Of a stretch of DNA of 51,862 bases, positions 62 to 20,266 are shown one piece after another. How positions within the stretch are numbered: the stretch's first letter is position 1; every line of letters starts with the position of its first letter. Made by a program: the position numbers and the translations under genes. The stretch is taken from assembly GCA_003427395.1 (NCBI GenBank), contig BFEA01000014.1, forward strand, positions 5,097,643 through 5,149,504, in the 5' to 3' direction. The notes under the pieces are model-generated. The model worked only from the letters and a program-made list of their open reading frames with translations, was not told the DNA's origin and searched no databases. This stretch comes from Chara braunii. Its lineage: Eukaryota > Plantae > Charophyceae.

Positions 62-495
62 GGTAGCTGTCAGAAATAGGTAGTGTGTATCAGCCTTACC
101 TAGGGAGTCAGGAGGTAGAGGTAGAGAACGGGTGATGGAGCGCATTGTGGGAGAGAGAATGGGCTTGTGGAAGAGAGCCATAGCTCGCCATGTGTAAGCG
201 AAAGGACTGAAGTTGTTCATAATTTGAATCTTCCAGCACACAGTAGTTGACTGCAAATGACCTCGTTCTTCAAAATCGGCGCAGACACATTTTCTAGGGT
301 CGTAGGTTTTTTGATCCAGAGTCAAGATTCAGTGGTCAAAGTGTGCATCTCTAGCTATATATAGAAGGGCGTCAGAAGAGTCCTTAGTCCTTAGGTCGAT
401 AGGTGATAGGTACTCAGCCAAGTGTCGAAAGAGGCACCCTGGACCCCCTGAAGCAAGTAATTGACTTTTTGGAAAGTCAAGAGTCAGGCCCAACT

Positions 496-525
496 GTCCT
501 CTGGGACATCCGTTAAAATTGGAAC

Positions 526-564
<39 letters not shown>

Positions 565-848
565 TGGAACTGTACAGAGAAGTGAAGATTCGCATGACCC
601 CTGCGAGCTTCCATGGCATCTTGACAACTACGTCCTGGCCTAAATCCATAAGAGTGAGGTTCAAAACGGGCTTCCCATTCGGGTTCTAGAACCATTTTAG
701 CTAATGCCTGTTTAGCTCGATCCGAAAAAGGAAGTGGTTCCATCCCGTCCAAGTTTGGCCATCGAACTTCAGTGTTCGAACTAATTCCATTTTTCCTCTC
801 GTCGCAAGGATGATACACATGAATCGAGAAATGGTCCAATTTTTTTTT
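496..848 (+). pseudogene. U6 snRNA retrocopy 1, interrupted by a poly(A) insertion and a group II intron RT fragment
   Basis: GTCCTCTGGGACATCCGTTAAAATTGGAAC...ACAGAGAAG...GATTCGCATGACCCCTGCG (496-605), resuming GCAAGGATGATACACATGAATCGAGAAATGGTCCAATTTTT (804-848). A-rich tail; TSD TCAGGCCC(A/G)ACT at 484-495 and 876-887. Confidence 0.92.
606..802 (-). pseudogene. Fragment of a group II intron-encoded reverse transcriptase/maturase ORF (organellar/cyanobacterial type)
   Basis: Minus strand encodes DRAKQALAKMVLEPEWEARFEPHSYGFRPGRSCQDAMEA (RT2/2a signature). An upstream piece in another frame reads MELVRTLKFDGQ (RT0/1-like); the intervening segment is deleted. Confidence 0.88.
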
Positions 849-1406
849 AAAGAAAAAAGGAAAAAAAAAGAATATTCAGGCCCGACTCGCGGACAATAGT
901 CAAAGTGTCAGAGAGAGATTTCATAGGAGTCGATCATGACCAGATATCTCACACACATCCCAAGGCTGAGTGGAGTGCTCCAGAAGCTCTCGAGGCCTGC
1001 TGGGTACCGACACACTTTGGGTGGCAACAAATCTGGGCCATCCAAGATCAAGTCCTTGTGTACTTTCCTTATTTATTCTAGCCAAAGCCGGGAAAAGGCG
1101 GCCCCAAAGAAACTACAAGAATGAATACAGCACACAAGGGGGGATATATTCAAATGGTTTCGCAAGGAATGCATATGAGATGCTGGACCCGGATTCCAGC
1201 AGGTGCTGCTCCCCGCCGCTAATAGACCGGAGCGATCTGTGGCAGGTGCTTCTAGAGGAGGCGGACGCTCATATCACCCCCTCTAGCACACTGGCATGCG
1301 GTTTTGTCCAAAAAAGAAAAAAAGAAAAGGAATTCTCAGCCACACAAGGAGGCAAGAGGGAGGCAGCCAGAGCTGAGTCAACAAGATAGAAGACTGACCT
1401 GCCCTA

Positions 1407-1511
1407 CCGTCTTCACCCGAATATAATGCCCGGTCATTATAACTGTATCTGGCACAACTTTCAGCCCAGATACGACGATAATTATGGGGCGTTCTATTCA
1501 GGTAAAGACGG
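1407..1511. mobile_element. ~105-bp Tc1/mariner-type MITE, copy A
   Basis: TA|CCGTCTT...AAGACGG|TA, near-palindromic, with a TA TSD. Confidence 0.8.
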
Positions 1512-1797
1512 TAGTTGGCTCATTCATTCTTGCCTCAGCCCCCTTCTTTTTTCTTCGCGACTCTCCTCTTGCAACAAACCTTCAATGCGAATTTGCGAAC
1601 ACCGATGTTCTGAGCTGCAAAAGCCTCAAAGCAGGACAAATGTCAAGTGGAGTTGAAAGTAAGATCACAAAGCTGAAATCACGCCAACTGAGAACATACA
1701 TGCGCTGACGTCTGTCGATAAAGAAAGCCCAACTTATCGCCTCGGCTCATCAATACAACCACAATGTAGCCGCTCTAGTATGATGTCACAACCTACA

Positions 1798-1800
<3 letters not shown>

Positions 1801-1869
<69 letters not shown>

Positions 1870-2132
1870 CATCCTACTTCTCTCCCTTACACTGTTTTCT
1901 CTCTCTGTCCAGTGCCCTCTCTCCTAGCAATGTTTGTTTGTCACCCAGACTCAATGCCAACCCACTTCCAACCCCAGTGCAGGTAAGGCCCTCTCTCTCT
2001 CTCTCTCTCCACATCCTACTTCTCTCCCTTACACTGTTTTCTCTCTCTGTCCAGTGCCCTCTCTCCTAGCAATGTTTGTTTGTCACCCAGACTCAATGCC
2101 AACCCACTTCCAACCCCAGTGCAGGTAAGGCC
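1801..2132. repeat. (CT)n followed by a near-perfect 142-bp tandem duplication
   Basis: CCACATCCTACTTC...GCAGGTAAGGCC occurs twice. Confidence 0.9.
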
Positions 2133-3017
2133 GCTGCTGGGTAGAGCAGCTACTGCTGCTGCTGCCTGCTTCTCACTTTCTCTTCCTCAATGAGCGCTGG
2201 ACTGGCCGCTGGCACTTGTGCAAAGCGAGCACTGAAAGCCAGTACCTCCGGATGTGTAGAATGCTGTGGCCTCCTCCCTTTTGTTCCTTCCTGGAGACCC
2301 TGTCTGAGTTTCTGACGACCGATTGGGCTTGAGCCTGGATTGCTAGACGCCGCAACTGACACGGAGGCCGGGCCTACTGGGTAGTTGGAGAGGCGGTGGT
2401 CCCGCCCCCAAATCCAATTGGATCATACCAGCTTTCACTCAGGGCTGGTGGATTTTTCTTTCTGCCATGGCCTTCACTTAGGGCCGGACATTTATTTTGT
2501 GGGTGGGCCCCTGCGAAGGGTTGTCGAAGCTTGAAGTCGCTTTCCAGCGCCCTTAGGTTCAAAGCCCTTGGCAGAACCCTTAACACCACCAGCACCTACC
2601 ACATTTTTGTAACCCCCCGGCTCGAATGAATATGAACCCAAGGGGCAGACCGATTCGGCTACCGCGTTAATGGATGCGCCAACCGTTAGGTACTGATGGT
2701 TTAATCTTACCTTTGCTTCCCTTTTATAGCCCTCTCATAACGAAAAAAAGGGCTTTGAAGTTTGAACCACTTCTACTTTTTTTTTTCTTTTTTTTTTTTT
2801 TGAGATGCAGACTTGGTTAGTTATTCTCTGGTATATCTAGATGAGCCTTGAAAGCCACTCTGAAATGCATCTGCGGATTGAGTGCTCTTCCATTACCCGT
2901 GACTTTTGCACAGGCATGGCGCATACGGAGGGGAACACTCTTCCATTACCTGTGACTTCCTTGCGCAGGGATGATTAGCATTCCCTCCGTCTTTTTTTGT
3001 TGTTTTTTTTTGTTTGT

Positions 3018-3120
3018 AATTTGGACCGTTTCTCGGTTTATGCGTGTCGTCCTTGCGCAGGGACGATGCTAATCTTCATTCGCTGTCTCATTCAATTTTT
3101 TAACGGATGTCCCAAAGGAG
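3018..3120 (-). pseudogene. U6 snRNA retrocopy 2 (near full length, diverged)
   Basis: Reverse complement reads CCTTTGGGACATCCGTTAAAA...ACAGCGAATGAAGATTAGCATCGTCCCTGCGCAAGGACGACACGCATAAACCGAGAAACGGTCCAAATT, followed by an A-rich tail. Confidence 0.9.
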
Positions 3121-3344
3121 TCACGGGCATGCTTTCTAGCTTCACCCCTGGCCAACTTTCTTGCCGCACGGGCCTTGTGCATGCGTGCTGGGTCTTCACT
3201 CGCTCACTTGTTGATGAAAGTAACGTGGGACCTGGGACTTGGGACCTGGGACTGTCCCTCACCCATTGCCGCACAGCACTGAGCACGCACGAAGTGCACA
3301 TGAGATAGGCATCCAAAGATAGGCTCTGCAAGGTCAACTCGTAC

Positions 3345-3900
3345 GTACAATGGCCGCCGGCAACAGCACACAGGTATGGTCTCTCCCTCGTGTACCCTAC
3401 TCTCGGGCTCAAGTCCTCTTTGAATACCACCTCCGGCCCCCTCCCGCTCTCCCCCAGACTATATAGCTATGGGCGCCTAGCGCCGTCGACATGCAGGAGC
3501 ACACAATAGTGCAGCAGTGATGTCTTCNNNNNNNNNNNNNNNNNNNNNNNNNNNNNNNNNNNNNNNNNNNNNNNNNNNNNNNNNNNNNNNNNNNNNNNNN
3601 NNNNNNNNNNNNNNNNNCTCCCCCAGACTATATAGCTATGGGCGCCTAGCGCCGTTGACCTGCAGGAGCACACAATAGTGCAGCAGTGATGTCTTCTTCA
3701 TGGCTGGACGGCAATGGCCGCTGGCAACAACACACAGGTATGGTCTCACTCTCTCTTTCCCTCTCCCTCTCCCTCTCGTACCCTACTCTTGGCCTAAAGT
3801 CCTCTTTGAATACCCCCTGCCCCCTCTCTCTCTCCTAGACTAGAGCTATGGGCGCCTAGCGCCGTCGACCTGCAGCAGCACACGATAGTGCATCAGCGCT
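3345..3900. repeat. Tandem repeat spanning an assembly gap (N run 3528-3617)
   Basis: AGCTATGGGCGCCTAGCGCCGT occurs three times, with shared flanks. Confidence 0.8.
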
Positions 3901-4301
3901 TCCACCTCGGCACGCCAGTGAATATGTGTTGACGACTTGCACAATTGCATGCTTGTATGCAGTGAATGGCCTTCGGGACTTCCTGTACCGGTACCAGACT
4001 GGATGTTGTTGCTTCTGGAATGTGTACAGCACCATATGGTATACCATATGGTATACCACTCACGTCTGGCGGACCTTCCATCGTCCGGAAGGTTACTAGA
4101 TTTCTAGTGTTAAGGGTCTCCTAGATTGCATCCTCATTTTATGGTGTTTGTAATTGCATCTGCTAACTTGCACGCTTTCGGTGTCTGTCACTGCATGTAC
4201 CTCGCTGCCATGACTCAGGGTCTAGGGGCTCCAGTGCGTTAGTGCGTCGAGCAAAGCAGGCAGAGAAACAAAAGCTCCCTCATCGCACTAAGCATACTGC
4301 T

Positions 4302-4367
4302 ATGGAGGACACTCGAACAGATCACCGCCCCCCTCGACACACGACGTCCAAGTATGATTTTGTCAAG
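4302..4367 (+). CDS. Exon 1 of 2-phosphoglycerate-kinase-like P-loop NTPase (MEDTRTDHRPPRHTTSKYDFVK)
   Basis: ATG at 4302 and 22 codons ending AAG|GTAAAC (donor at 4368). SKYDFVK joins in phase 0 to VKVWLGD of exon 2, rebuilding the conserved plant motif SKYDFVKVKVWLGD. Further upstream exons cannot be excluded. Confidence 0.85.
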
Positions 4368-5509
4368 GTAAACAAAAGACCCAGTACTCCTCCCTGTATT
4401 GTCCCCTCCTTCTCTCCCTTTATTGCCCCCTCCCTCGCTCCCATCTTGCGTACTCCCTGCCTCTGTGGACTTCTCCCTCCCTCCCTCCCTCCCTCCCTCC
4501 CTCCCTGGATTGCCCCCTCCGTCCCTCACTCCCTGGACCACTCCGTCACTCCTCCCTGGATTGTTCCCTCCCCGGATACCTCCCTCCCTCTCTCTCTCCC
4601 TCCCTCGCTCCCTCCCTGGCTCGCTTTTGCCTGTGTCTGCATGTTTGTGCATGTTGTCTCCCTTCCATGCATGTACTGCAATTGGGTAGCTGCCTCTGTG
4701 ATCTATCCTGCCTTTCATGTTCTTTCTCTTCTTCTGTTTCCTGTCGTTTTTTTTTCGTTTTTTTTCCCCTTGTCCTTCTGTGTGTTCATGGCAGCCCTTG
4801 CGATGTTGGCAAGGATATCGGACGGTTCGATTTGGCCAAATTTGTTGAATGTCATTTTCAAGTGGCACGGTCCATTACACAGTCCGTTAGGCGGCAGTGC
4901 TATTTCCCTCCTTTGAGGGATTTTCTTTTCTTTTCTTTTCTTTTTCCCGCGCCTCTTTGGGCCATCAGCAGGCTGAGTGTTGGTGCTCTGGTGCAGCTGT
5001 GTTTGGGGCTGCTGGAACTCCCGTGGTACATATGTAGTTGGGGCCATCGGGGAGCTTTTGGGTTGAGGATGGGGTTGTTTGTCCTGGGATAAAAAAAAAA
5101 GGGCGATGGCCTTGAGATATCATCATTGAACTGACCTGACCCAGGTAACTCGGAATGAATCTATTATGCTGATCTTGTTGTGTCGGGATTCGAACTTCGA
5201 TCTGTATTTCAACAGTTCGTTGGGTGTAGCAACTGAGCCAGGCCTGTTGGTGCATCCTTGGATTTTTCAAAATTTGTGCGGAAGTTTTTTGAGTTGGTCT
5301 TGACTTCTTGAGATTTTGTTGGGGCGGACATTGGACTCCTTAGAAGTTAGTTATTTTGACAGGCATGGGGGGGCTCGACATGGGGACCACCTGTGTGGAC
5401 AGGCAGTGCGAGTAAGAGTTTAAGAGATGAACTGGGACTGCGACAGGGGAGGGACTGTGCAATTCATGGGATGGGGATGGTACTACCTACCTTCCAGGAG
5501 ACTACCCTA

Positions 5510-5615
5510 CCGTCGTCACACGAATAGAACGCCTGGTCATTATGGCGGTATCTAGACTGAAAGTTGCCCCAAATACAGCTATGATGACCGGGCGTTATAT
5601 TCGGGTGGAAGACGG
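5510..5615. mobile_element. ~105-bp Tc1/mariner-type MITE, copy B (intronic)
   Basis: TA|CCGTC...GAAGACGG|TA; similar to copy A in the opposite orientation. Confidence 0.8.
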
Positions 5616-5734
5616 TAGGGAGCAAAAGAAGGGAAAAGGAACGATTTGTCCTTCCATCCGGGAGACAGTAGTCGTACTGTGCACTTCCTGAAGAACTGGC
5701 GGGTGGGCCAGCGAATCGCATCCAGGAGAGAAGT

Positions 5735-6182
5735 GCCCACGTCGGTTCATTCTTTTACTGACATGCAACAGAAATCGGGAAAAAGAGGCTTGGAGGTACT
5801 GGTGGTTTGATCGCGCAAACGAGTCCGCCGCGGCGTCACGAACCTTAGGACGGGAACGAGCAACGGAGGAAAAGAACAGAACCCAGATGAGAAGCAAAAT
5901 CTCTTCAGTGGAATTTCATGCCCATGTCCATCCAGGACATTGCTGTGTTTTCTATGTTGGCGGTGACTCAGTGTCGTTGTACATGGATGGACATGCACAT
6001 GGAGTTCCAGTGATGAGTTTTTGCTTCGCATCTGAGTTCTGTTCTTTTCTCTGTTGCTCGCTCCCGTCCTACGGTTCGTAAAGCCGCTGCGGACTCGTTT
6101 GCCCGATCAAAGCACCAGTACTGCCGAGCTTCTTTTCCCCGATTTCTGTTGCGTGTCAATAAAAGAATGAACTGCCGTGGGC
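5735..6182. repeat. Long inverted repeat (foldback), ~200-bp arms, in the host intron
   Basis: GCCCACGTCGGTTCATTCTTTTA... pairs with ...TAAAAGAATGAACTGCCGTGGGC across a short central loop. Confidence 0.9.
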
Positions 6183-6271
6183 TTTTTTTTTTTTTTTTTT
6201 TTTCTTCTGGCCTGGTGCCGCCAGCTGTTTTGATTCGGCAGGCCAAGTCCCGAAGGACATCGTGCGTTAGG

Positions 6272-6335
6272 ATAGGGGTCAGTGCAGAACGCCTGCCCTC
6301 AGAACCACACGTGACAGTTTCCCGTCATGCAGCTC
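6272..6335 (-). ncRNA. Group II intron domain V + domain VI (3' end), probably an organelle-derived relic
   Basis: Reverse complement GAGCTGCATGACGGGAAACTGTCACGTGTGGTTC is a canonical 34-nt DV (AGC triad, GAAA loop). It is followed by a DVI-like stem with a bulged A ending ...CTGACCCCTAT (AY terminus). Confidence 0.88.
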
Positions 6336-6627
6336 GCCCCCCAAAACCTTAGCCTTGTTTGTGGGCTCGGGAAGGGAAGCTGACAAACAGCTTCGGTTCG
6401 CGCCTTCCGACTCTTAATTGTCTGGAATCAATCACATCTGAGCCATGGTCATTGAAGTGGCTGGGAATGGTGCTAGTGCTTCATAAGCAATTTAGGCCGT
6501 TGACAAGGAAGTTCAACACGGCCGATATCGCTTGATCCATGCAAGTGGACCTTGCCCCTGGTGGTGGTCCTCCAATATTTCGTTCTTGTGGCCGCTCCCT
6601 GTTGTGTGATCTATGTGTTGTGCTTTC

Positions 6628-6661
<34 letters not shown>

Positions 6662-8869
6662 CTTTTTTTTTTTTTCCAAATGCAGTCGCTGTGTAGTGGC
6701 GCGAACACTTTTTCACTGATCTGATTTCAGGAGGATATGATCAATTACCCCGGCGCACCCTCACCCCCCTGTTGTGTGATCTTTGTGTTGTGCTTTCGTT
6801 TTTTATTTATTTATTTATTTATTTTTTAATGCAGTTGCCGCTAATGTAGTAACCTGCTCAAAACATGCTACTGTCGTCGGCCAGGGGCCGCCCACAGGCC
6901 ACAGTAAGGCCCTGTGCCAGACGGTACCCAAACAAGGCCCCGAAACGAGGCTTCAGAGGCCCTGCGCCCGACAGTTGACTGAAGAAAGTCAACTGGAGGT
7001 TGGAAATTGAGCCTCACGAAATTGAGCCTCACGAGTCAAAGTCTGCACGGACCCAGTCCAGGCCACCGATCAGATACGCACATTTGACTGTATGCAGGTA
7101 TCCGGGCCAAATCTGGTCCAAGTGGAAGTCTGCAACTGTATGAGATCCAGGCCATCGACTGCGAGTCAATCTGAGCCCTCGTATCCGGGAGACCAGAGGC
7201 TGGTCAACTTGCGACTACACTACTTATTGATTCAGGCCCGCTCATCGACATTCAGTCTTGCACTTGCTGCTCGACGCTGGCACGACGCTGGCATGACGCT
7301 GGCATGGCCCTGGCACGGCGCTGGCATGATGCTGGGACAGCGCTGGCATTGTGTGTGACGACGAGCTGAGACTGCTGCATTGTGTTGCTGCCGCCTCTCT
7401 GTTGTTGGCGCTAGCTGAGGTATTGGGTATTGATTGCCTACGTGGCACTTGCGACATTGTCTTCGACACAGCGTGGGGTATCGACAAGGAGGGAGATCAG
7501 GGCTGTGAGATTGGCTGTGAGAGAGAGGTAAGCTTACCTGATTATTGTTGTCGACATTGCGCACTGCTGTGACGTCTTCATGGGAGATCTGTGCCTACGT
7601 GGCACTATGTTGTAATCGGTTCTCGCCAGGCTCGTCTTTGGGGTGCTGTACGCTGACGTGGACAGAGGGGAGATGCCCAAAGGAGGAGTGTGACGCGAGG
7701 GAGATCGATCTTCGATGACATTGATGGATACTTTTCTCTTCCAGCCTCTAAGTCTTATCTCTCTCCTATCAGCTTCGTCCCTTGGTTACGAGACGTTGTA
7801 CTTCGGATCACGTTCATGATTATCGGAGACATTGATTTGCGCCGAGAGTCCGAGACATCTTGTACTTTGACTTGACGAGGTTTCCGATTGACTGGGCTCA
7901 TTGCTTTAAGTTGCTGTAACACTTTTCTCACTGATCTGATTTCAGGAGGATATGATCAATTACCCCGGCGCACCCCCCTCTGTCCAACTTTAGTGTGGAC
8001 CACCCAGGCTGAGCGGGGGGACCACCACTACTTCCCCACTCAGCCCTGGTTGAAGTGGACGCCGTGCAGGCCCTGTTGCGTGGGTTCTTCGGGAGCTAGG
8101 TGTGAACGTGCGACTACAGGTCTTGCCTGAGAGGGTTTAGACTCCCCTCTGCCAGCAATCGGTATTGTATTATTGTTGTTATGACCTGGGGCCCGCAGGA
8201 TATGAGTCGAACTATAGCCTATAGACATCGCGGGCAGTGTCTAATGGCGTCTCCCCAGCCAAGGTCTAACCTCATGACATCCCCTCTGAAGCCCAGGTTA
8301 CCTACCTTTTTTTTTTTTTTTTTTTTTTTTTTGAAGCCCAGATTACCTGCCTAGTGATACTGTTGTTGTGGTTATTCTGAACGTTATTTGATTGGATGCC
8401 AGTCTGTTTGGATCCTAGCCTTCTGTCATCAGTGGGTTCTCTGGTCCAGTCATCCATTACCTCACCTCGGTCATGAGCTAGATCCCTCTGTAGTTGTTAT
8501 ACGGTTGTAAACGGCCCTTAGTCGCCGTCATTAGTATGTAGGAGGCGGCCACCATCCGTTCCATTAATTCCGTCATGAACTAGGGTCGCTGTTAGAGTTT
8601 TGTATTAGGACGGGACGGGGACAATCTTATGTTGGAGGATCCCCCTCAGACAGCAGCCCCTACTGCAGGTTCCCCAACGATCTCCTTCACTAGAGTCTGT
8701 GGGGTCCCTAAGACAACCCCTACTGTAGGTTCCCCCCCAGTATCCTCCAGCAGAGCTTGTCCCAACCAGGCCGCCCCTGAAACAGGACCCCATCACCCCA
8801 CCTAGGACCTTGGGCCCCGAAAGCAGAGCCGTAATCCTACCTGCATCCCCACTATAGCCATGGAATATG

Positions 8870-9236: not shown

Positions 9237-9747
9237 ACTTGATCTGTTGATCCAGAATTACGTGTGTGTAACGGTGTTCTTTCGTTTGCACTTTCTCTTT
9301 TTTCAATTTTTTATTATTATTTTAAAGAAAGGAGTATCTCCTGACACTATTGCATCGATCTTATTTCAGGAGGATTCGAACTCTTGATCTTTTTCTAGAC
9401 AGTTACATGTCTGTACCATTCAGCAATGTGAGGCAGGTTCTTTTGCACCGCCTCTTGCTCTTTCTCGTGACCCAAAAAGTCCTTTTCGTTGTCTTATTTA
9501 TTGTTTCCTCCGCTTCTTTCAAGTCTTTGTTTCCTTCTGAAGATTCTCTGTTCTTTTTCTTTTTCTTTTTCTTTTTCTTTTTTTTTTTTATATTTGGGTG
9601 GGTGAGGGTTAGGAGGAGGGGCACTGTCATGCGATTGTTTTTTTTTGTTTTTGTTTCTTTTTTTTTTTTTTTTTTTGTTGTCGTCTCTTTCTTTTTGTGT
9701 AATTCTTTTTCTGTTTGTTTGCTTGTCGCCTTGTGTTGTCATTGCAG

Positions 9748-11460
9748 GTTAAGGTATGGTTGGGCGATCACAACGATCACTATTATGTACTGTCTCGCTT
9801 CCTTGTGAGTAGGACGCTCACACTTACGCAAATCCCTCATGTGACAGCGATCAAGATTGCTCTTGAGCTGAAGAAGCTCCTCGTGGACAATTCTTTATTG
9901 GATGTATCGCAGAGCGACCTGGAGGCCAACCTTTTCAAACTTATGCGAAGACGAGGATTCGGCGACGAGTACATCAGTCGCTATCAGATGATGACCCGGT
10001 TTCATCATTTGCGTGTTCCGCTCATTGTTCTGGTCTGTGGGACAGCGTGTGTGGGAAAGTCGACGATCGCCACACAGCTGGCCCAGCGCCTGAACTTGCC
10101 AAATGTCTTGCAAACGGACATGATCTACGAGTTGCTTCGTACGGCCGAGGATTCACCGCTGCATCCAGAGCCGGTGTGGGCAAGGAACCTGAGTCCTGAG
10201 GAAGTCCTCAGCGAGTTTTGTAGAGAGTGCCGGGTTGTGCGGAAAGGGCTTGAGGGCGATCTTGCAAAGTCGATGCGAGAGGGCAAGCCCATCATCATTG
10301 AAGGGGTACAAATAGACCCTGCTATTTACCTCCAGGAGATGGCTGGCATTCTGCCTCCGTTGTCGACTGCTTCTGGTCCCAATGGCGTGGTCCCCACCCC
10401 ACCGGCGACCATCGATTCATTAGGCGTCTTGGTAACGCCACCGGTTCCTGATGTCTGTGGTCCCGGTCGGGGGCCCGACGGCGACACCGCGGATGCAAGT
10501 GTTGCGCGCAGGTCACAACAGCGTTCCGATGATGAGAGCAGCGGTAGAGGGCAAGGCGAGGCAGGTTCTGTAGCGATCGCTGATCGAGCGAAGGTTGGGT
10601 GGAGCAGTGGAAAAGGGCTAGAAGAGGAGGGCAGGGGCACACCTTCACCGAGCGAGTCGAGCGGAGAAAGGGAACTCCAGCACGCCGGTCCCAGCAGTGG
10701 CAATGTCAGAGGCTCCAGCTGTGCCACGGCCGGCAGTGGAAGGTTTGGTTCCGTCACGGCACAGGGAAACGGGACAAGTGGCGAGGGTGATGAACCAGAG
10801 GAAGGAGGTGGGGAGAATGGGGTGAGGAAGAGCATCGAACGTGCGGAGCTTGGCTCCGTAGACAACGCAAGTGAGGAGTTGGACGAGCATGTCGGCTCAA
10901 GATGCAAGGCGGAGGGTTCAGTTCAAGCAGCATTAGGGAACTCAAGTATAGGGAGGGAGGAGACGGAGAAGGGTGCAGCGATGGAGGGCAGGACTGGAGG
11001 GGGAGAGAGCATAGAGGAGACGACGGGGAGGGAGGAGGATGGGCAGTTGAAAGCTGGAGAAGAAGGGAAGGCGGAACTGGGGAAGGATGCAAGAGAGGAC
11101 GTTGCGGTTGTTGGGAAGAGCGAGTCGTCGAGGGCGGAATGCACGAGGAGAAAACAAGTAGGGAAACATACTTTGAAACCGATCATTGTGTTAATTGTGC
11201 TGAAAATGGACGAGGAGGACCACGACTCGCTCCTGGAGGAGTGGTTCGGGAACAGAATGAGCCCACCGTACGATGGCAACTTAGCGCAAGTGAGGGCTAA
11301 TCTCAGGGTCATTCAGAAGTACCTCTGCTCTTTTGAAGGTCAAGGGGTTGCCACAGTAAAGGTCTCACCAACCACTTTTTCTCAGACCCTTGATGGGCTT
11401 CATGGTTTTCTTCTACAAAGCATTGAAATGGGATGCCGCATGCAATCTCTGAAAAAATAA
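9748..11460 (+). CDS. Exon 2 of 2-phosphoglycerate-kinase-like P-loop NTPase (plant family related to LPA1-type proteins; resembles Arabidopsis At5g61450); spliced product ~592 aa
   Basis: Pyrimidine tract and TTGCAG acceptor at 9747. Uninterrupted ORF with Walker A (GTACVGKST), TQLAQRLNLPNVLQTD and GKPIIIEG, a long low-complexity G/E/S linker, and a C-terminal PIIVLIVLKMDEEDH...NLRVIQKYL block. Confidence 0.9.
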   Translation, partial: VKVWLGDHNDHYYVLSRFLVSRTLTLTQIPHVTAIKIALELKKLLVDNSLLDVSQSDLEANLFKLMRRRGFGDEYISRYQMMTRFHHLRVPLIVLVCGTACVGKSTIATQLAQRLNLPNVLQTDMIYELLRTAEDSPLHPEPVWARNLSPEEVLSEFCRECRVVRKGLEGDLAKSMREGKPIIIEGVQIDPAIYLQEMAGILPPLSTASGPNGVVPTPPATIDSLGVLVTPPVPDVCGPGRGPDGDTADASVARRSQQRSDDESSGRGQGEAGSVAIADRAKVGWSSGKGLEEEGRGTPSPSESSGERELQHAGPSSGNVRGSSCATAGSGRFGSVTAQGNGTSGEGDEPEEGGGENGVRKSIERAELGSVDNASEELDEHVGSRCKAEGSVQAALGNSSIGREETEKGAAMEGRTGGGESIEETTGREEDGQLKAGEEGKAELGKDAREDVAVVGKSESSRAECTRRKQVGKHTLKPIIVLIVLKMDEEDHDSLLEEWFGNRMSPPYDGNLAQVRANLRVIQKYLCSFEGQGVATVKVSPTTFSQTLDGLHGFLLQSIEMGCRMQSLKK

Positions 11461-11538
11461 CAGGAAATTGCTAGATTGTGGAAACCCTGCTCCTCCTCGT
11501 TTTCTAATTGTCTGCATCTAGCTTGTTTGCCCAACTTT

Positions 11539-11880: not shown

Positions 11881-13550
11881 GTGTCTATGGGTCCTGATCT
11901 TCTTCTCCTCTACATCTATAGCCGTTCTCACTCCCTTTGTCCTCGTCGCTGACGTCGTCGTTGTCCTTATCGTCGTTGTGGCCCTCTCCTCCTCGCTGTC
12001 TTCGGTGCCCGTTTAATGACTAAAATTTGCTCCTCTCTCTCAGATGTTTGACTCTCCCCTCCCTCTATCTCTACAAGCATTTCCTTGCCTTTCTCCACCT
12101 CCCCCACCTCCTTTTCCTCCTCCTCCGCCTCCTCCTCCTCTGCTTCTTCCACTAACTACCCCATTCATCTACGCATATTCGTCGATGTAAGTATGTTCTT
12201 CCTTATATCCCGACTCGTGCCTCTATATCTCCCCACATCCTGCGGCGTCTCAACCTGAGCGACATCCCCCCCGTGGTTTTCTCAGCCGGCCCTCGATGAA
12301 TTCGTTTGCGTGTCATTTATTTATACTCTTTAAAATTCTTTTGCACAAATTTGCAGGCGATTGCGCTTCTCTTCCTTTTCCGAACACTGTCTCCACCACC
12401 AGCCTCACTCTCCCTCATCCACACATGTACGAGGATCTACCCTGAATGTCCACGCTACACAGACACACACACTCTGTACACTCTGTCCGTGATAACAGCT
12501 GGGCGGCTATGGCCGCCGTCGTCTTCCTCGCTGCCGACTTCAGCTCCGGGCACCTGCAGACCTCCATGCACAAGTCACCAAGTCAGCGCTTCCGCATGGC
12601 TCACAGGCGAATGAATGAATGGCTGGACGCTGCCTCTTTATTTATACTTCTTCGGAGGTGGTCGGGCCCTGCCTGGGCCAAAACGCGTGGGCCTGGCCCC
12701 TTACCGCATGGGGCCCGCGTCTGGACTCTTCCAGGCCGTGTAGGCCTGGTAGGCCCAAAACGCGTGGGCTGCTGGGCCCCAAAACGTGTGTTCCGGACCC
12801 TTCTGCATACCACGTGGCCACATCCTTCCCCCCACGTGCAGCCCTTCCCTGATACTTGCTGACTGGACCGGTCCACAGGGACCTACAGTCTTCTAGAGTC
12901 TACAGTCCTACGGACTGACTCTAGGTCCTCAGTAGACTCAGGTAGAGACTTCTAGAACAGCCCCTCCTAGGACTACCGGTAACATACTCTACCTGAGTCT
13001 AGGGCCCTACTAACCGACATACCTCGGGATAAAGTCCAACTTACCCAAGCTACGGCCTAACCTATGACACGGGACAGGTTGCGGGTTCGAATCTCACACA
13101 GTCCAGTCACTGGGTAGATGTGCAGGGCACAGGCATAGGTCTAGGGATCGAATCTCACTCAGCACACAGGGGCAATGTACAGGGTTCAGGCATAATAGGT
13201 CTAGGGATCGAATCTCAGTGTCTGAAAATGTCGGATCAACGGGGTGAAACCGTTTCGTTTCACAGCGTTAAACTTTTTCAGTTTTGTGCTTTTGTCGTTT
13301 TGGGAATTGCATGTTTGCCCTTTGTTCAATTTCTGAAAACTGGCCTCGGGGGATATTTCTGTAATTTCCGCACCTGGGACAGGCCTGCAATATAATTTCG
13401 GCAAACAGAACTTGACCGTGACCGGGTAGGCCTAAAAAAAGTAACGGAGGGTACCAAATCTTTCAGGTAAAACTATTTCCGACCCCCCCCCCTCCCCTCG
13501 CCATCTTTTGAAGTGGCAAGATGCCGTGGTACTGGCTCATGGGGTAATCT

Positions 13551-13581
<31 letters not shown>

Positions 13582-13687
13582 GTGGACCCATGGGGTATTC
13601 TATCCGCACCAACTCCCTGAAAGTAGGCCAGGCCCCCGCAGCCGGCGGCTGACTGCCTGACCGTCAGTGTACTTGAACCACCAGTAA

Positions 13688-13854
13688 GGGCCAGATCCCA
13701 CTGGCAAAGAGGATTGGAAGAAGTGTCTGAATCTGCACGTGTTCCACGCAGAGGTGCAGAAAAAGTAGATCAATCATAGTTTTTGGCACCTGTCCACAAA
13801 CACGTCCGCATTCAGACACTTGCTGCAATCCTCTTTGCCAGTGGGATCTCGCCG
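13688..13854. mobile_element. Tourist/Harbinger-like MITE (167 bp, almost fully palindromic)
   Basis: TAA|GGGCCAGATCCCACTGGCAAAGAGGATTG...CAATCCTCTTTGCCAGTGGGATCTCGCCG|TAA. Confidence 0.82.
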
Positions 13855-14340
13855 TAAGTACACCCGGGCCTGGAGGCGCCGTACTGCGCGCCACACTTTT
13901 CCGAACCGCCAGCGGCACACTTTTTTTTTTTTTTTTTGGCTGGCGCCACCAGTCATTGTGGTCCTGTAGGTAGGCCGAGCCTCCGAATATTTTTGTAGGC
14001 GACGAGTTGCATTTTCAGCAAGGCGGTTGGGCCGTGTACTGGCGGTTTAAGGCCCAGCCGGTCTGGTCAAGCGCACACATGTCAATGCCCACTCCTCGAC
14101 CCGTCCGCTGACGGGAAAGGTCTACCGTCTTCCCCCCAACATCCAAACAAAACACATATGTGTTGCATTTGAGTTTTCAAAAAACTCAAAAATCCGAATA
14201 GAAAGCATACGCGTTGTATTCGAAATAAGGGCTGTTCGAATAGAAAGCAACCTCCATGTTGTTTTCCTTTAACAACACATCTGTGTTTTGTTCGGGGGAA
14301 GCCTGTAGTCAAATGCACACTGGTCAATGCCAATTTCTGA

Positions 14341-14427
<87 letters not shown>

Positions 14428-14499
14428 AGAGTGCGCCGCACCAGCGTTGTTTGATTTGATCGTCTGCCGACGCCGGCTTCAGTGTGCCTGACCAGTTAC

Positions 14500-15030
14500 A
14501 GCTATGCTCTGTGACTTGTCGGCCATTCTCAAGGTACGCGGTTCCTGAGCCGAGGTATCTGAGCAGAGACCAGTCTGGCCGGCGAGGGGAACAGTGTGGT
14601 GTGTACACCTCGCAGCGGGGAATTTTCGGAGTGGAGGCTTTGGGCATTTTGTGCATGGTGGGGTGCGGTGAGAGTGACGACCGAAGCAGATGCAGGGGAT
14701 GGTAGAAGTGTCGAAGTGTGTACTAGGAAAGAAGGCTGCTGTGACTTGTTCGACGTCGTCAAGGCACGCGGTTCATAAAAACAGTGGCATCTGTGGTATC
14801 TGAGCCGAGACCATCTGCTTGGCGAGGGGCATAACAGTGTGTACGCCTCGCGACGAGGAATTTTCGAAGTGGTCTTGGCTAAAGATACCACTGTTTTTAT
14901 GAACTACGCGACAGGGAATTTTGGAAGTGATGGCTTCGGCCTTGGGTAATTTGTGTGCATGGTGACATGTGGCAAGATTGAAGCGTAAAGCAGGTGTGTA
15001 GATGACGGTGGAAAATGTCGAAGCGTGTCA
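14500..15030. repeat. Degenerate tandem repeat (~240-bp and partial units)
   Basis: GGTATCTGAGC.GAGACCA and GGAATTTT.G.AGTG recur two to three times. Confidence 0.65.
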
Positions 15031-16045
15031 CACGTAAGGGTGCTGGCTGGTGATGATGGGTGACGGCGGCACATCAGAGCTGCGCGGCGAGGTTGCACGG
15101 AAGGCTGCTGGGTGAGTCGCGATGACGAACTGAAGAGCAAGTTCAATCAGTTGTGGCTGTAATTTGTTATGCAGTGCAAGAAAAAAGGTCTGTTGTGGAG
15201 AAATATGGGAGGAGGAATGATGGAACAGCCATATATTTTTGTCAAAAAAAAAAAACAAGAAACAAAAAAAAAAACGGGAGGAGGTTAGTATAGAGTACAA
15301 TGGGGAGACAACAAGTTCGAATGAGTAGTGCAGAGGAGAATTTTGGGAGATATAACCAACGAGCGACAAGCGTAGGTCAGTTGGCACACCCGTGAACTGT
15401 TGAAATACAGACGTGAGTTCGAATCCGTATGGAGAAAGGAGAAAGGAGAATTGGGAGATATAAGAGTAGAATTGAGGTGGGAATTTGAATTAGTAGTACA
15501 GAGTAGAACTGAGGTGGGAATTTGCGCTGCTGCAACTACACAAGGACAAGTTGAGTTTTTCTTTTCGTATTCTTTTTACTTTACTTCGATAAAAAAACAT
15601 CTTCCTCGGCTATGGTCTGTCTCTCGGACAGGTATTGTTCTTCCCCTTGAGTGATGTCCGACTAATCATCAGACTGAGGGCCTCGCCTGGGCACTCGGCA
15701 AATATGCAAAATGGGAATGAATCTTTCGCTAGGACATGGAAAGATACGCCGCCGTAAGTTGTCTTTTTTTGTTTTTTTTGCATTTGGTGAGTAGCGCGGC
15801 GAGAGGCCTTGGTGTCATATCAGAGCTTATATTCTAGAGAAGATTCCAAGGATGAATCAGATGAGAGTTCCTTCCCGGAGAAGAAGGCGGCAAATGTACT
15901 ACACACCAACGGAATCATGACGCATAGGTGATTTTTTTTTTCCCCCTTTTTTTTCTCTTTTTTTTCTATATTTGGTGAGGGAATTGAGAATTTCTGCAGA
16001 AGTAGAGGTTGATTTCTTTTTATCTTTGTTTTCATCTTTTTTTTT

Positions 16046-16147
16046 TTTTGGACCATTTTTCGATCCATGCGTGTCATCCTTGCACAGGGGACCATGCTAA
16101 TCTTCATTCTCTGTATCGTTCCAATTTTAACGGATGTCCTGAAGGAC
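16046..16147 (-). pseudogene. U6 snRNA retrocopy 3 (full length)
   Basis: Reverse complement GTCCTTCAGGACATCCGTTAAAATTGGAACGATACAGAGAATGAAGATTAGCATGGTCCCCTGTGCAAGGATGACACGCATGGATCGAAAAATGGTCC, then poly(A). Flanked by AGAGGTTG(CA)ATTTCT direct repeats. Confidence 0.93.
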
Positions 16148-16223
16148 AGAGGTTGCAATTTCTGCAAAAGTAGAGGTAGCAATTTGTTTTCGTCTTTTTT
16201 TTTTTCTTTTTTTTTTTTTTTTT

Positions 16224-16331
16224 AAGTTCACCCCTTCTCAATTTATGCGTGTCGTCCTTGCGGAGGGGCCATGCTAATTAATCTTCTCCGTATTGTTACA
16301 CATTAGAATTTTAACTGATGTCCCGAACGAC
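16224..16331 (-). pseudogene. U6 snRNA retrocopy 4 (tandem with copy 3)
   Basis: Reverse complement GTCGTTCGGGACATCAGTTAAAATT...ACGGAGAAGATTAATTAGCATGGCCCCTCCGCAAGGACGACACGCATAAATTGAGAAGG, then poly(A). Confidence 0.88.
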
Positions 16332-16374
16332 AGAGGTTGCAAATTGCAATTTCTTTTTTTTTTCCAGAAAAAAA

Positions 16375-16430
16375 CATGGCCCCTGCGCTTTGAAGGATGA
16401 CACGCATAAATCGAGAAATGGTCCAATTTG
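16375..16430 (+). pseudogene. U6 snRNA 3'-half fragment (copy 5)
   Basis: CATGGCCCCTGCGC[TTTG]AAGGATGACACGCATAAATCGAGAAATGGTCCAATTT matches the 3' half of plant U6 with a 4-nt insertion. Confidence 0.9.
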
Positions 16431-16506
16431 TTTTTTTCTTCTTATACTGTCACTGAGGCCTTCCCCTTATCGCTGTCCTACGTACATCACCATCTAGAAT
16501 GCAAGG

Positions 16507-16540
<34 letters not shown>

Positions 16541-19113
16541 TCCGTACGTGCCCAGCTCCATATTCATTCTGGGGTAGTTGCAGTGTCTGTTCTGTTCTGT
16601 TGTCAGTCTCTGCAAGTAGTTGGGGGAAGGAATCAATTTCGAAAAAATGCACCCCTTCTCAATTTGCGCTTATCATCGAAGCTGGGCGCTTTAAGGACCT
16701 GTTTTTTTTTTTTTTTCCCTGAAGAAGGAAATACATTGTTATAACTTATAAATGAAGACAGGAACGGCCATGCCCAAGGCTGCTCTTGAGTACTTGCTTG
16801 GTTGTGCAGAGAGCTTGTGAGCTCTCTGTATCGCTTGGGTCACAGTGCCACCTGTTCGGGGACCAGTGGCGCTGAATGTAACCTGAGCCTGTTGGGGGAA
16901 GGTGCTGGTTTCACTAATATCCTTGGGTGGGGNCTCTCATCACCCCGATGCGGGCAGTCCGTCGCCTCACACCCACACAGAGTTGTCACCCCGCTTGATC
17001 CAAGCATGCAAGACAGGTTCGCCTGTGTGCCACAGTCCGTCACGGCCCCACGTCAACCCCGCACGCTCCGCATCAGCTCGTGGATCGCCAAACTCTCTAC
17101 TCACCTGCCAGATTTCGCTCGTTAGCCGATCCTCTCCTCTCGACCGCGCTAAGTTCCAAAATTCTTAGAGAGGGAGTTAACCGCGCTTACGAAATTTATA
17201 GCAGGCATGCGTGTGCGCGCGATACCCGGGATTGTGTCTGAGTACGGGGAAGAAGGAGGAAGGGAGTGCCTACGACTGCATGGCCAGGCCATGGCGTGGG
17301 GGACATAGGCTCACTCCACACATCGATCCAGTCATGCACGCGTTCAGGCCAATAGGGCAGAGGAAGAAATACGCGAGCACGGAGGCGCCACAAAAGATAC
17401 CAAGAGCGAGGGAATTACAGTTGCAATTATGCCCGCCAAAACAAAATTTACAGTTACACTCAGGATTAAGGCGTGGAGAAATCAGAGCACAGATCTTGAC
17501 GTGGCATGGCGTGCGCAAGCAAGAACCGCCGTGCAGCAGAATTGAGGTGCGCCTAAATTCCTAATTCTAATTCCTAGTTGCAAAAAGAAATTCCAGACGA
17601 AGCAATTTCCGAGAGCCCCGCCGCGGGGGCTCGACATCAGTTGAAAATTCAAAAAAAGATTTCCACGCGCTACAATCGCGCCAAAAATTCCCCATTCTCA
17701 CAGCAGAACAAGAAAGAAGCTATGGCAACAGTTATTCGTCGCACTCGCTAAGGCGAGATCAACTACCAACCGTCACGGGACCAGGCCAGCCCCCCCCTTC
17801 CCAAAGGATGCGAAAGCACAAGGACGCGTAAAGCAAGGGCATCCATGCAATTCACCAGGCCATCCGGACTCAACCCATTTCAACCCCCGACGTAGCCTGA
17901 CGCAGAAGATCATGCGGTTGCAGAAAGTAGTTCGTCACAATGCAACCGTGCCTTATTCTGCTGGCTGAAGGTATGTTGCCCCCTCTGCTGCAGAGGCGTG
18001 ATAATGGATGTCATCTGGACAGCAAGAAATGCAAGGGTTTACAGAGGAGAAGATTCCCTCCAAATTTCAAGAGCAAATGCAGATCAAACAAGGTATTAGG
18101 AGGATTTTTCAGGCGGATTGGCAGAGAAGAAAACATTATATGGTTCCAAAAAACTTGGGCATACAAGGATAGACTAGCGATAGTCAATGCCAAAGGTCGC
18201 TTCTCCTTTTGTACTTTGTTCTCAGATGCACATGACTGAGTATGCGTCATAGACTGCACAGCCACCTTTGGCACAGAAACCAGGAATTTTAGACTGTGGA
18301 CAGCCCTGTCAATAGGGTATAAAGGGAGTATACAGTGGCTGTCACTCAGGGGGGGCTTTGCTACCCCACCTTTTTGGTGCTTCAAGTTTTATCTTCTGGA
18401 AGAAGAGATCTTTTAGAAGGCGTAGAGCTATGGTACACTGGACCCAGTTTCCAGGACAAGCCTATACTGGGTAATGACCCCAGGTCTTTCACCAGGTTGT
18501 TTGTGAGGATTCGTGGCCTCGACATTTATTTGTTATTAAAGCATGATTTCTTCCAAAAAGAAGGAATAATAATAATTTCATTGTCGGAAACACAAATGAA
18601 TACCACAGAGGTGAGACTTGCAAGTCGGCCCCACACGCCGCCCTCCCAGATCGAGGTCCCAGGAGTTCAGGGCCTCACCATGCTAAATGCCAAGTGCATT
18701 GTTATGGAGAAGGGGGCAAGATGCATCCTTCAAGTATGCGTAGGGTGCAGTGGTGGGTCTTCCATGTCCTATGGGAGGAGTTACCTGCCATTTCAAGTTG
18801 TCAGGGTACATGAGTAGTGCGGCGATGTCCCTTTCTCCTGCCTTGAGGCCTAGTTGCACCACTACCACCAACATGTTGAATGCATCGGGACAGCTTTGCC
18901 TGCTCAGATTCGTGCACGATTTTGGCGGATGGCGAGTGGTACAGTGAGGTCTTTGCTCTGAACTCCGCTGTAAGTATACCTGGATCAATGGACGGACGGT
19001 CGGGATGACCAGATTCATCCACAACTTTGCCTGGTGTGTGTTCCAGCAGAGATTCCTGTGGTCATGGTGGAACAGCAGACGTAGACCAGCAGACACCACC
19101 ACTGCCATTACTC

Positions 19114-19228
19114 TTTTCTTTTTTTTTTCCCTTCTTTTTTCTTACTTCTTAGTCGTTCATCGTCCTTGCGCAGGGGCCATGCCAATCTTCTGCGTATCGT
19201 TCCAATTTCACGGGATGTCCCGAAGGAC
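19114..19228 (-). pseudogene. U6 snRNA retrocopy 6 (3' end diverged) with A-rich tail and TSD
   Basis: Reverse complement GTCCTTCGGGACATCCCGTGAAATTGGAACGATACGCAGAAGATTGGCATGGCCCCTGCGCAAGGACGA, then an A-rich tail. TSD CTGCCA(T/C)TACTC at 19102-19113 and 19230-19241. Confidence 0.92.
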
Positions 19229-20266
19229 GCTGCCACTACTCCAACCTTAGGGCATACTCAGATACCACTTAGTACGTTTTGCTTCACTTCATTTCCTTGC
19301 CCCCCCCCCCTCATATTTATCCTCCCTCAAACTTTTCATGCTCTCAAAATGGCATTGGGGCCTGGCCGCACCGCTCGCCAAATGCGCAAATGACAAAACT
19401 TGACGACCTGATGTTGGTGTACATTCGTTCTCATTTTGCACATTTGCCGAGTGGCGCGGGGAGGCCCTTGGTCTCTGTTTTGGGACCCCGCCACTATGGG
19501 ACGTCCCACTTTGCTGGCTGGGGGTCCCACTGGATTCTTTTTTGTATGCAGGTTGCAGTTTGCTGGTACCAGCCGTAGATTACGTAACTGCACCCAAAAC
19601 AAAAAAGAAAGTAACTGAGATCAATGGGCCTCGCTCCACTACTCTAGACTCCCGAAGTTTTGAGAGTAACGCTTTGCCAGTGCTCCACTTACTCTACACT
19701 GGAACTCATGACAACACCCTTCAAGAGCTGTCAGAAAGCGCTCGAAGGACTCTCTCCGAGTCTATTTGTTTAGAGTTCATAGCCTTGCAACACTCATGTT
19801 TTCTAGCGTCCTCCCTCCTACCCCTGCTCTGGCCTCTTTTATCGCGAGTGTGGCCCCTGCCCCGACCATCAGAACGAGGTGGCGTTGTCATCTAGCACTC
19901 TAGAAGGGCTGTCAGTAGCGCTGAGAATTTTGTGAGTGCTTCTTCAGTTCTTGAGTCTGGAGTAAGTGGAGCGATGCATCTGTTTTCAAGAGTCCTAGAC
20001 CTCTGACAGCTCTAGAGTCACTCACAATTTTTTCCGCAAGTCCAGTGTAGTGGAGCGAGACCCAATGACAAGGAGTGGGATTGCCCCGTTCTTTTGACAG
20101 TGGGCCTGGCTGCACTGCGGTTGATTCCTTCTTATTTTGCACATTTGGTGAGTGGCAGAGCAACGTTCATTTTTACAGCAGGCAATCATTTTATTTCATT
20201 TCTTCGGGCCCAATCCCCAAGGGGGAACAGAATCTGCGGGAACGAGATCCGTCCCTGTAAGACAGT

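Follow-up and report, generated by a model that had tools for sequence, protein, structure and literature searches.

A window of 51,862 nucleotides of Chara braunii DNA (contig BFEA01000014.1) was analyzed in this study, which revealed at least eight U6-derived pieces, mutated and promoter-less, within approximately 19 kb (Table 1). An earlier note on this stretch had listed at least six U6 copies; all six places were confirmed as U6-derived sequence by Rfam and blastn, and two further fragments (2952–2975 and 16645–16700, both on the minus strand) were added by blastn. Four of the six exceed the gathering score of the Rfam U6 model (RF00026; 44 bits), and the E-values of the matches, 1e-10 to 1e-15, rule out chance matches. 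The copies lie on both strands as had been reported, copy 1 and copy e on the plus strand and the others on the minus strand. Judged by ACAGAGA–AGC spacing, internal stem-loop, U-tract terminator and upstream USE/TATA, no functional U6 gene was recognized.

Two host genes have annotated ranges that enclose the U6 copies, whose position is most likely intronic; a 100% match was obtained to the Chara braunii gene CBR_g12525. Searches covered 75 kb of the genome, in which U6 is absent from the 23.4 kb upstream and the 32.6 kb downstream of the cluster; local clustering, which had been raised against a widespread family, is thus seen at the scale of these 75 kb. No tRNA, 5S, 7SL or other snRNA copies were found in the same 75 kb, which suggests that U6 was favoured for retroposition. 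No U6 copy is closer than 400 bp to the assembly gap listed in Table 1. This gap is bordered by a 79-bp direct repeat (3449–3527 and 3618–3696, 97.5% identical) with a third copy at 3767–3896 (85–87% identical), and the repeat on either side indicates that the gap is situated within a tandem repeat or within an artefact of overlap.

Table 1. Features of the U6-bearing region and neighbouring LINEs (positions in the window).
Position	Strand	Feature	RF00026 match	Remark
484–495	+	5′ TSD, copy 1 (TCAGGCCCAACT)		abuts U6 +1
496–529	+	copy 1, U6 nt 1 to ~33		from +1
530–564	+	A32 + TCC within copy 1		later poly(A)-only insertion
565–605	+	copy 1, U6 continued		up to loop of internal stem-loop
606–802	-	197-bp captured fragment		in U6 internal stem-loop of copy 1
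803–848	+	copy 1, U6 3′ part	802–845(+), 24.6 bits	T9 end; under gathering score
849–875	+	copy 1, A-rich tail		
876–887	+	3′ TSD, copy 1 (TCAGGCCCGACT)		
2952–2975	-	short second U6 fragment		internal stem-loop part; shortly 3′ of copy c tail
2991–3015	-	copy c, A-rich tail		
3016–3124	-	copy c, full-length U6 retrocopy	3015–3124(-), 57.1 bits	
3528–3617	.	assembly gap		within tandem repeat; outside every U6 copy
16037–16049	-	copy a, A13 tail		U6 U-tract lacking
16050–16147	-	copy a, U6 retrocopy	16042–16147(-), 66.8 bits	best-scoring
16148–16195	-	~47-nt spacer of tandem unit		second instance 3′ of copy a, ~15985–16036
16196–16223	-	copy d, A-rich tail		
16224–16331	-	copy d, full-length U6 retrocopy	16220–16322(-), 51.5 bits	actual 5′ end at 16331
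16375–16436	+	copy e, 5′-truncated	16336–16432(+), 30.2 bits	3′ half of U6 only; under gathering score
16645–16700	-	fragment f, decayed U6		internal deletion; AAATTGAGAAGGGGTG in common with copy d
19102–19113	-	3′ TSD, copy b		
19114–19159	-	~19 nt non-U6 sequence + A-rich tail, copy b		
19160–19228	-	copy b, U6 nt 1 to ~76	19131–19228(-), 59.1 bits	3′-truncated
19230–19241	-	5′ TSD, copy b		
28400–32093	+	decayed LINE, A26 end		RVT_1; example of poly(A)-tailed LINE type able to supply machinery
38584–45615	+	second decayed LINE		approximate limits; RVT_1, weak zf-RVT match, A-rich 3′ end

Structure of the U6 copies

Copies 1, a, b and d begin with GTC(C/G), which corresponds to U6 +1, and the 5′ end of copy c lies within 1–4 nt of it, bearing out the claim that the starts of five copies coincide with or adjoin this nucleotide. 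A-rich tails, previously ascribed to most copies, follow copies 1, a, b, c and d and are absent from copy e and fragment f. Clean TSDs occur in two of the five full-length copies: the 12-bp repeats already described for copies 1 and b each match at 11 of 12 bases (p ~0.003 for random flank pairs). The flanks of copy c yielded no clear TSD, and the tandem array masks those of copies a and d; a flanking repeat of ~14 bp at copy a, formerly listed beside these TSDs, proved to belong to the ~170–185-bp array unit and is no TSD. No USE-like motif was found near any U6 copy using the angiosperm USE consensus, which may not be that of Chara, and no TATA was seen by eye at −30 in any of the five full-length copies, so the absence of USE/TATA stated by the earlier note for two inspected copies holds for these and beyond.

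Copy 1 is interrupted twice. Its poly(A)-only insertion is bracketed by an exact 9-bp repeat, TGGAACTGT (520–528 and 565–573), both copies of which carry the same two substitutions relative to canonical U6, indicating that the duplication arose in the DNA copy. The 197-bp fragment codes, antisense to U6, for part of a group II intron reverse transcriptase (TIGR04416, E 2.2e-13; PDB group II RTs), and reading of its junctions revealed neither a TSD nor an A tail. Near copy c, the short second U6 fragment is preceded by an inverted GATTAGCAT piece.

Copies a and d are part of a tandem arrangement, in which 15989–16158 and 16157–16342 are 76% identical. Copy e, which stands head-to-head with copy d, has no substitutions over 48 nt; its internal stem-loop has gained TTTG in the loop. 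Judged by sequence, copies a and d and fragment f belong to one rearranged local array and are not independent events; copy e is perhaps a further member of this locally multiplied array.

Divergence from canonical U6 ranges from 0 to 12% across the copies (5.4% in copy a, 9.6% in c, 10.1% in b and 11.7% in d), and this range of decay points to retroposition over an extended time. Four of the five copies spanning the ACAGAG–AGC spacer carry 4–5 extra bases there, the exception being copy b with canonical spacing. The extra bases are AATG in copies a (after ACAGAG) and c (after ACAGCG), a 5-base AAGTG in copy 1 (ACAGA-GAAGT-GAAGATT) and an ATTA duplication before AGC in copy d, which also has seven additional bases near nt 25. 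A C at the bulged U is found in copies b, c and d and the +4/+5 insertion in copies a, c and 1, so that the two markers conflict. These extra bases may represent either descent from variant U6 sources, whether a single gene or lineage or several, or a recurrent stutter of reverse transcription. Plain, independent copying of a single canonical gene does not readily explain the indels shared among copies. Accordingly, the star-like radiation that had been named as the mark of plain processed pseudogenes is not seen, although a recurrent hot spot could also give shared indels.

Origin of the U6 copies

No intact LINE is present in the window. The reverse transcriptase of the second decayed LINE has human L1 ORF2p as its best PDB match (E 1e-23, versus 1e-10 for an R2-type RT). 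Taken together, the +1 starts, A tails, TSDs, lack of a promoter and L1-like LINEs alongside indicate LINE-made U6 processed pseudogenes, and it is likely that the copies form a dense population of such pseudogenes in the nuclear genome of Chara braunii. The earlier attribution of massive U6 retroposition to local L1/Tx1 LINEs is therefore supported as regards an L1-like machinery. The 3′ ends of the U6 copies have no sequence in common with any LINE in the window, and no LINE-like sequence that would form a U6/LINE chimera lies 3′ of any copy. Because no LINE is intact and none is similar to these 3′ ends, the partner LINE is inferred, as are the LINE family that acted and the way in which the RNAs gained their A tails.

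In the proposed mechanism, a U6-sized RNA with an A tail would be copied into nicked chromosomal DNA by target-primed reverse transcription, with the endonuclease and reverse transcriptase supplied by L1-like, poly(A)-dependent LINEs. Two sources of the A tail are conceivable: polyadenylation by nuclear surveillance, and a switch of template that began on the poly(A) tail of a LINE. After insertion, local multiplication and rearrangement of one copy gave a, d and f, and perhaps also e, and copy 1 was hit twice more, by the poly(A)-only insertion with its 9-bp TSD and by the captured fragment.

Spread mainly as DNA, whether by tandem or segmental duplication within the locus or by carriage in larger mobile elements such as LTRs, could account for the unit shared by copies a and d, including its 47-nt spacer, and for the derived bases common to fragment f and copy d. 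As an explanation for the copies in general it is improbable, since the U6/tail limits of copies 1 and b coincide exactly with TSDs of their own, copy a resembles c and b only up to the limits of U6 and tail, and, the a/d unit aside, no copy resembles the rest of the window beyond U6 and tail. A cluster of functional or recently functional U6 genes, which four copies above the gathering score and two in tandem might suggest, is close to refuted: the copies score 51–67 bits versus 87–96 bits for intact U6 genes with the same 5′ motif, four of five copies have a disrupted catalytic spacer, the U-tract terminator is replaced by A tails, TSDs are present, USE/TATA are absent, and the copies are inside host-gene ranges.

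The shared extra bases bear on two other readings. The possibility of a true U6-derived SINE, put forward by the earlier note, would involve a variant lineage marked by the bases after ACAGAG that has its own master copies, has either retroposed copies or a small number of source loci as its transcription templates, and amplifies in an Alu-like manner via LINE machinery. Such a lineage is consistent with the same four bases in a and c, the 5-base version in copy 1 and an A-to-G change common to copies a and 1, and the 0–12% ages suggest long activity; the shared-indel argument by which Kojima recognized SINEU-3 as a family is of the same kind (PMC4494074). It nevertheless seems quite unlikely, as the copies share only U6 and an A tail, with neither a head-body-tail structure nor a LINE-derived 3′ end in common among them, and their 3′ ends differ in every copy. 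In addition, a motif search found no A-box or B-box within the U6 copies, USE/TATA are absent upstream, the insertions are not one state and all three resemble local re-copying, the distribution of the C at the bulged U disagrees with that of the insertions, part of the copy density stems from one local array, and only five to six copies are informative.

It is possible, though less likely than not, that the extra bases are instead a mutational signature. The LINE reverse transcriptase would stall on mature U6 once it had copied the G of ACAGAG, perhaps because a nucleotide there is modified or paired, add one base, backtrack 3–4 nt and re-copy, so that independent retrocopies of ordinary U6 would gain near-identical insertions. 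Each insertion does re-copy adjacent U6 bases, reading GAA+T+GAAG in a and c, GAAG+T+GAAG in copy 1 and a perfect ATTA duplication in d, and four of the eight indels of at least 3 nt fall within 9 of 104 positions (P = 0.003). An extra T would be the expected outcome of non-templated A addition to cDNA by reverse transcriptases. However, the identical insertion in a and c is more simply explained by common descent, DNA slippage after insertion may be an alternative source, and mammalian U6 pseudogenes are not known to show a signature of this kind.

Comparison with known snRNA-derived retroposons

Mammalian U6 snRNA processed pseudogenes made by LINE-1 comprise poly(A)-extended and 3′-truncated classes with TSDs (Doucet et al., 2015; PMC4476161); such pseudogenes were reportedly also described by Garcia-Perez et al. 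in 2007. Similar to the Chara copies, they have full-length 5′ ends, poly(A)-extended or 3′-truncated 3′ ends, variable TSDs and a lost external promoter, and require an L1-clade LINE of the poly(A) ("relaxed") type. Unlike them, the Chara copies reside in a streptophyte alga, carry a recurrent 4–5-nt insertion in the catalytic spacer, occur partly in local tandem arrays and include no U6/LINE chimera in the window. Their local density, one Rfam-grade copy per ~19 kb, is ~180 times that in human (one per ~3,400 kb; 906 hits, ≥90% identity), although the counting methods differ. U6/LINE-1 chimeras, which arise via template switching or RtcB ligation (PMC6789731, PMC13174262), likewise have U6 at the 5′ end, full-length from +1, in one TSD-bounded insertion, but in the window no LINE fragment follows U6, and copy b has ~19 nt of unassigned sequence before its tail.

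The crocodilian SINEU elements are U1/U2-headed SINEs with a fixed composite consensus, a target preference and a tie to Tx1 LINEs (Kojima, 2015; PMC4494074). Both they and the Chara copies are short retroposons of snRNA origin, the parent gene having an external promoter, with indels shared among copies; in contrast, the Chara copies consist of bare U6 and an A tail, have L1-like LINEs nearby and display no preference for particular targets. A precedent for a family descended from U6 is reportedly the ancient U6-derived primate repeat of Hasnaoui et al. from 2009 (Gene 448:139). We read the Chara copies as a dense U6 retropseudogene population rather than a demonstrated SINE. It is conceivable, if unlikely, that Chara braunii hosts the first SINE-scale retroposon family from U6. 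The extra bases would reflect either a catalytically dead "master" variant of U6, preferentially polyadenylated and retroposed, or reverse-transcriptase stutter at a fixed spot of mature U6.

The mechanism favoured here, LINE-mediated formation of U6 processed pseudogenes, is already known from mammals, but the local density in these probable introns of a stonewort alga is very high. If the stutter reading is true, these retrocopies would record an RNA feature of mature U6, such as a modification.

Structure and location of the U6 copies

All six places at which the earlier note had recognized U6-derived sequence were genuine and correctly positioned to within a few bases, as judged by the Rfam U6 model (RF00026, gathering score 44 bits) and by blastn with the copies as queries. 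The copies are called 1 and a to e here, and f is a fragment. Four matches in the window exceed the gathering score, every one on the minus strand, and the sequence belongs to the U6 type of the green plant lineage.

Position 1 of the window corresponds to base 23396 of the annotated locus L001 on contig BFEA01000014.1, and a large exon at 9715–11460 was matched at 100% to CBR_g12525 of Chara braunii by protein search. Copy 1, copy c and a scrap of a group II intron lie within the range of this plus-strand gene, 5′ of its last exon, and copies a, d, e and b together with fragment f lie within the range of the next gene, on the minus strand. Because a 79-bp direct repeat (97.5% identical) stands on both sides of the assembly gap at 3528–3617, the gap probably falls within a tandem repeat or represents the overlap of two contig ends; a third, more diverged copy of the repeat is found 200 bp further on. 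The nearest U6 copy is 400 bp from the gap, which affects no U6 reading. An exact 142-bp tandem duplication beside GA/CT low-complexity sequence (1849–2132, +; 100% identity) reflects a recent duplication event or else an artefact of assembly.

Copy 1 extends from U6 +1 through a T9 end into an A-rich tail and is interrupted at two points. The first interruption consists of 32 A plus TCC between exact 9-bp repeats TGGAACTGT (520–573, +). Both repeats carry the same two substitutions relative to canonical U6, and therefore the poly(A)-only insertion came later, into the DNA copy; with its exact 9-bp target-site duplication (TSD), it can be read as an abortive LINE insertion. The second, a 197-bp piece (606–802, −), occupies the loop of the U6 internal stem-loop. 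In antisense to U6 it codes for a portion of a reverse transcriptase of the group II intron type (TIGR04416, E = 2e-13; also PDB matches), and its best relatives are metagenomic proteins 76–92% identical over ~40 residues. Because this is an antisense internal piece of a reading frame with no intron ends, no tail and, apart from perhaps 2 bases, no TSD, we rejected an RNA-level (reverse-splicing) event, and filler DNA captured at a break appears more likely. Copy e carries a 4-nt TTTG insertion in the same loop.

The 12-bp TSDs reported earlier for copies 1 and b are present, and their lengths have a probability of ~0.003 each in random flank pairs. No clear TSD was found in the flanks of copy c, and a short second U6 fragment lies just past its tail. 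Copies a and d are both full-length, with A13 and A-rich tails, respectively, and occupy two units (76% identical, 47-nt spacer included) of a ~170–185-bp tandem repeat; the 14-bp repeat that the earlier note saw flanking copy a is this tandem unit and no TSD. Derived bases are common to fragment f and copy d, and copy e is a 5′-truncated 3′ half of U6 that stands head-to-head with copy d and has no tail. Thus, although all of the at least six copies claimed in the earlier note are U6 sequence, they represent only about four to five independent insertion events in the window, rather than six or eight.

Positions of U6-derived features in the window
Feature	Position	Strand	Description
Copy 1, single insertion	484–887	+	Bounded by TCAGGCCCAACT and TCAGGCCCGACT
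Copy 1, U6 5′ piece	496–534		blastn with copies as queries
Copy 1, U6 middle piece	574–605		blastn with copies as queries
Copy 1, 3′ part, U6 match	802–845	+	RF00026, below gathering score
U6 fragment beside copy c	2952–2975		blastn with copies as queries
Copy c	2991–3124	−	Full-length, A-rich tail
Copy c, U6 match	3015–3124	−	RF00026, 57.1 bits
Copy a, U6 match	16042–16147	−	RF00026, 66.8 bits
Copy d, U6 match	16220–16322	−	RF00026, 51.5 bits
Copy e, U6 match	16336–16432	+	RF00026, below gathering score
Fragment f	16645–16677		blastn with copies as queries
Copy b	19102–19241	−	U6 nt 1 to ~76, ~19 nt of non-U6 sequence, A-rich tail, 12-bp TSD
Copy b, U6 match	19131–19228	−	RF00026, 59.1 bits

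Gene features and probable LINE retroposition

Intact U6 references were obtained by a metagenome scan with the Chara-type U6 5′ motif, which retrieved eight snRNA-gene clusters of other organisms. These reference genes score 87–96 bits, as against 51–67 bits for the Chara copies, and every one of them has the canonical ACAGAGAAGATTAGC spacing, with U as the bulged nucleotide of the stem-loop. Substitution divergence from canonical U6 amounts to 5.4% in copy a, 9.6% in c, 11.7% in d, 10.1% in b, 9.5% in copy 1 and 0% in e, a spread suggesting that insertions took place over an extended time. Upstream of the U6 copies in the window there is no plant USE motif, and no TATA at −30 was seen by eye, as the earlier note had reported for copies a and b. 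On these scores, divergence and promoter results, we rejected the copies as working genes. The JGI metagenome contigs L002–L009 carry compact eukaryotic clusters of U1, U2, U4, U5, U6, U3, 5S, SRP RNA and tRNA-Sec genes, in which U6 has the Chara-type 5′ motif.

A B-box is likewise missing from every U6 segment of the window. Elsewhere, tRNA-type B-box motifs (AGTTCGAATCC) recur at 5186–5236, 9372–9382 and 15377–15426, the first and last of which are connected by an inverted 50-bp match; these repeats may be a tRNA-derived SINE or MITE. At 26669–27343 (+) the window encodes part of a DDE transposase of the PIF/Harbinger type (DDE_Tnp_4, E = 2e-16).

Two decayed LINEs are present on the plus strand. 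One ends in A26 at 32068–32093, and the other, A-rich at its end, encodes an RVT_1 domain and matches zf-RVT weakly. For the LINE reverse transcriptase domain, the match to human L1 ORF2p has E = 1e-23, whereas that to an R2-type enzyme reaches only 1e-10. Protein searches with the LINE reading frames found no Chara proteins, and exact look-ups of the window's reading frames found nothing. In mammals, poly(A)-extended and 3′-truncated snRNA pseudogenes require a poly(A)-dependent L1-type LINE (PMC4476161). With L1-like poly(A)-tailed LINEs in the window, and with A-rich tails on five of the copies and TSDs on two, the LINE retroposition of U6 proposed earlier is well supported.

An A22-tailed insert at ~6190–6345 (−) contains domain V/VI of a group II intron (Rfam, 50.9 bits, 6272–6337) and then ~60 nt in which 12 nt of the U6 5′ stem-loop recur exactly (GTCCTTCGGGAC, 6247–6258); the insert is flanked by a possible 7–8-bp TSD (AGCCCAC). 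Together with the poly(A)-only insertion in copy 1, this insert shows that insertions of this kind were common in the region. Another insert, of ~25 nt plus A38 (16487–16537, +), has similar short sequences on either side (GTCCTACGTAC and GTCCGTACGT) and is probably a further, extremely 5′-truncated retro-insertion. No tRNA, 5S, 7SL or other snRNA copies were identified in the 75 kb of Chara DNA covered (the window and 23.4 kb upstream of it); U6 is the favoured retroposed RNA here.

Density and shared bases among the copies

Over 75.3 kb of Chara DNA there is one Rfam-grade U6 per 18.8 kb, compared with one U6 BLAST hit at ≥90% identity per ~3,400 kb in human (PMC4476161), giving a local density ~180 times the human figure, a rough ratio because the two counts were made by different methods. 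No U6 was found in the 23.4 kb upstream or the 32.6 kb downstream. The window copies are thus clustered, the chance of four or five random sites lying this close being 0.05 to 0.016.

The earlier note considered a true U6-SINE, which the structure of these copies does not support: likeness between them ends at the limits of U6 and tail, their 3′ ends vary (trimmed U-tract plus A13, T9 plus A-rich tail, truncation at nt 76, and others), and they have neither a common body nor a LINE-derived tail. A true SINE therefore appears to be a minority possibility.

Several derived states are nevertheless shared and may mark a U6 family descended from a variant source lineage. Copies a and c have the same four extra bases in the catalytic spacer (ACAGA-GAAT-GAAGATT), copy 1 has five (GAAGT) at the same point, an A-to-G change is common to copies a and 1, and copies b, c and d have C at the bulged U; since this change creates a CpG, inheritance from a source is more probable than three separate gains. 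Kojima argued the family status of SINEU-3 in this manner, from a shared indel (PMC4494074). However, the extra-base and bulged-U markers conflict in their distribution, the 4-base gain of copy d in the same 9-nt spacer is of another kind (an ATTA duplication), and all three insertion types look like re-copying of neighbouring bases, with one additional T in two of the types. If the reverse transcriptase backtracked repeatedly at a single point on mature U6, the same picture would be expected among the five informative copies; of the eight indels of ≥3 nt, four lie within 9 of the 104 positions (P = 0.003). A scan of viral contigs for the motif with four extra bases gave no matches.

Implications for Chara

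A search of literature other than the Chara genome paper itself gave no paper describing U6 copies in Chara. The mechanism appears to be the mammalian one, acting in a new lineage and at an unusual local density. U6 copying by LINEs, as characterized in mammals, seems to occur in a streptophyte alga as well, beyond the animals, and it helps to explain the filling of the large Chara genome. It also creates an annotation hazard, as snRNA counts made with Rfam in Chara will be dominated by dead copies. The insertion that recurs in the catalytic spacer calls for an explanation: it may stem from a variant source gene or may be a reverse-transcription signature. If the former is true, it would be a natural case of an externally promoted gene seeding a retroposon family; if the latter, thousands of retrocopies would record the state of U6 RNA.
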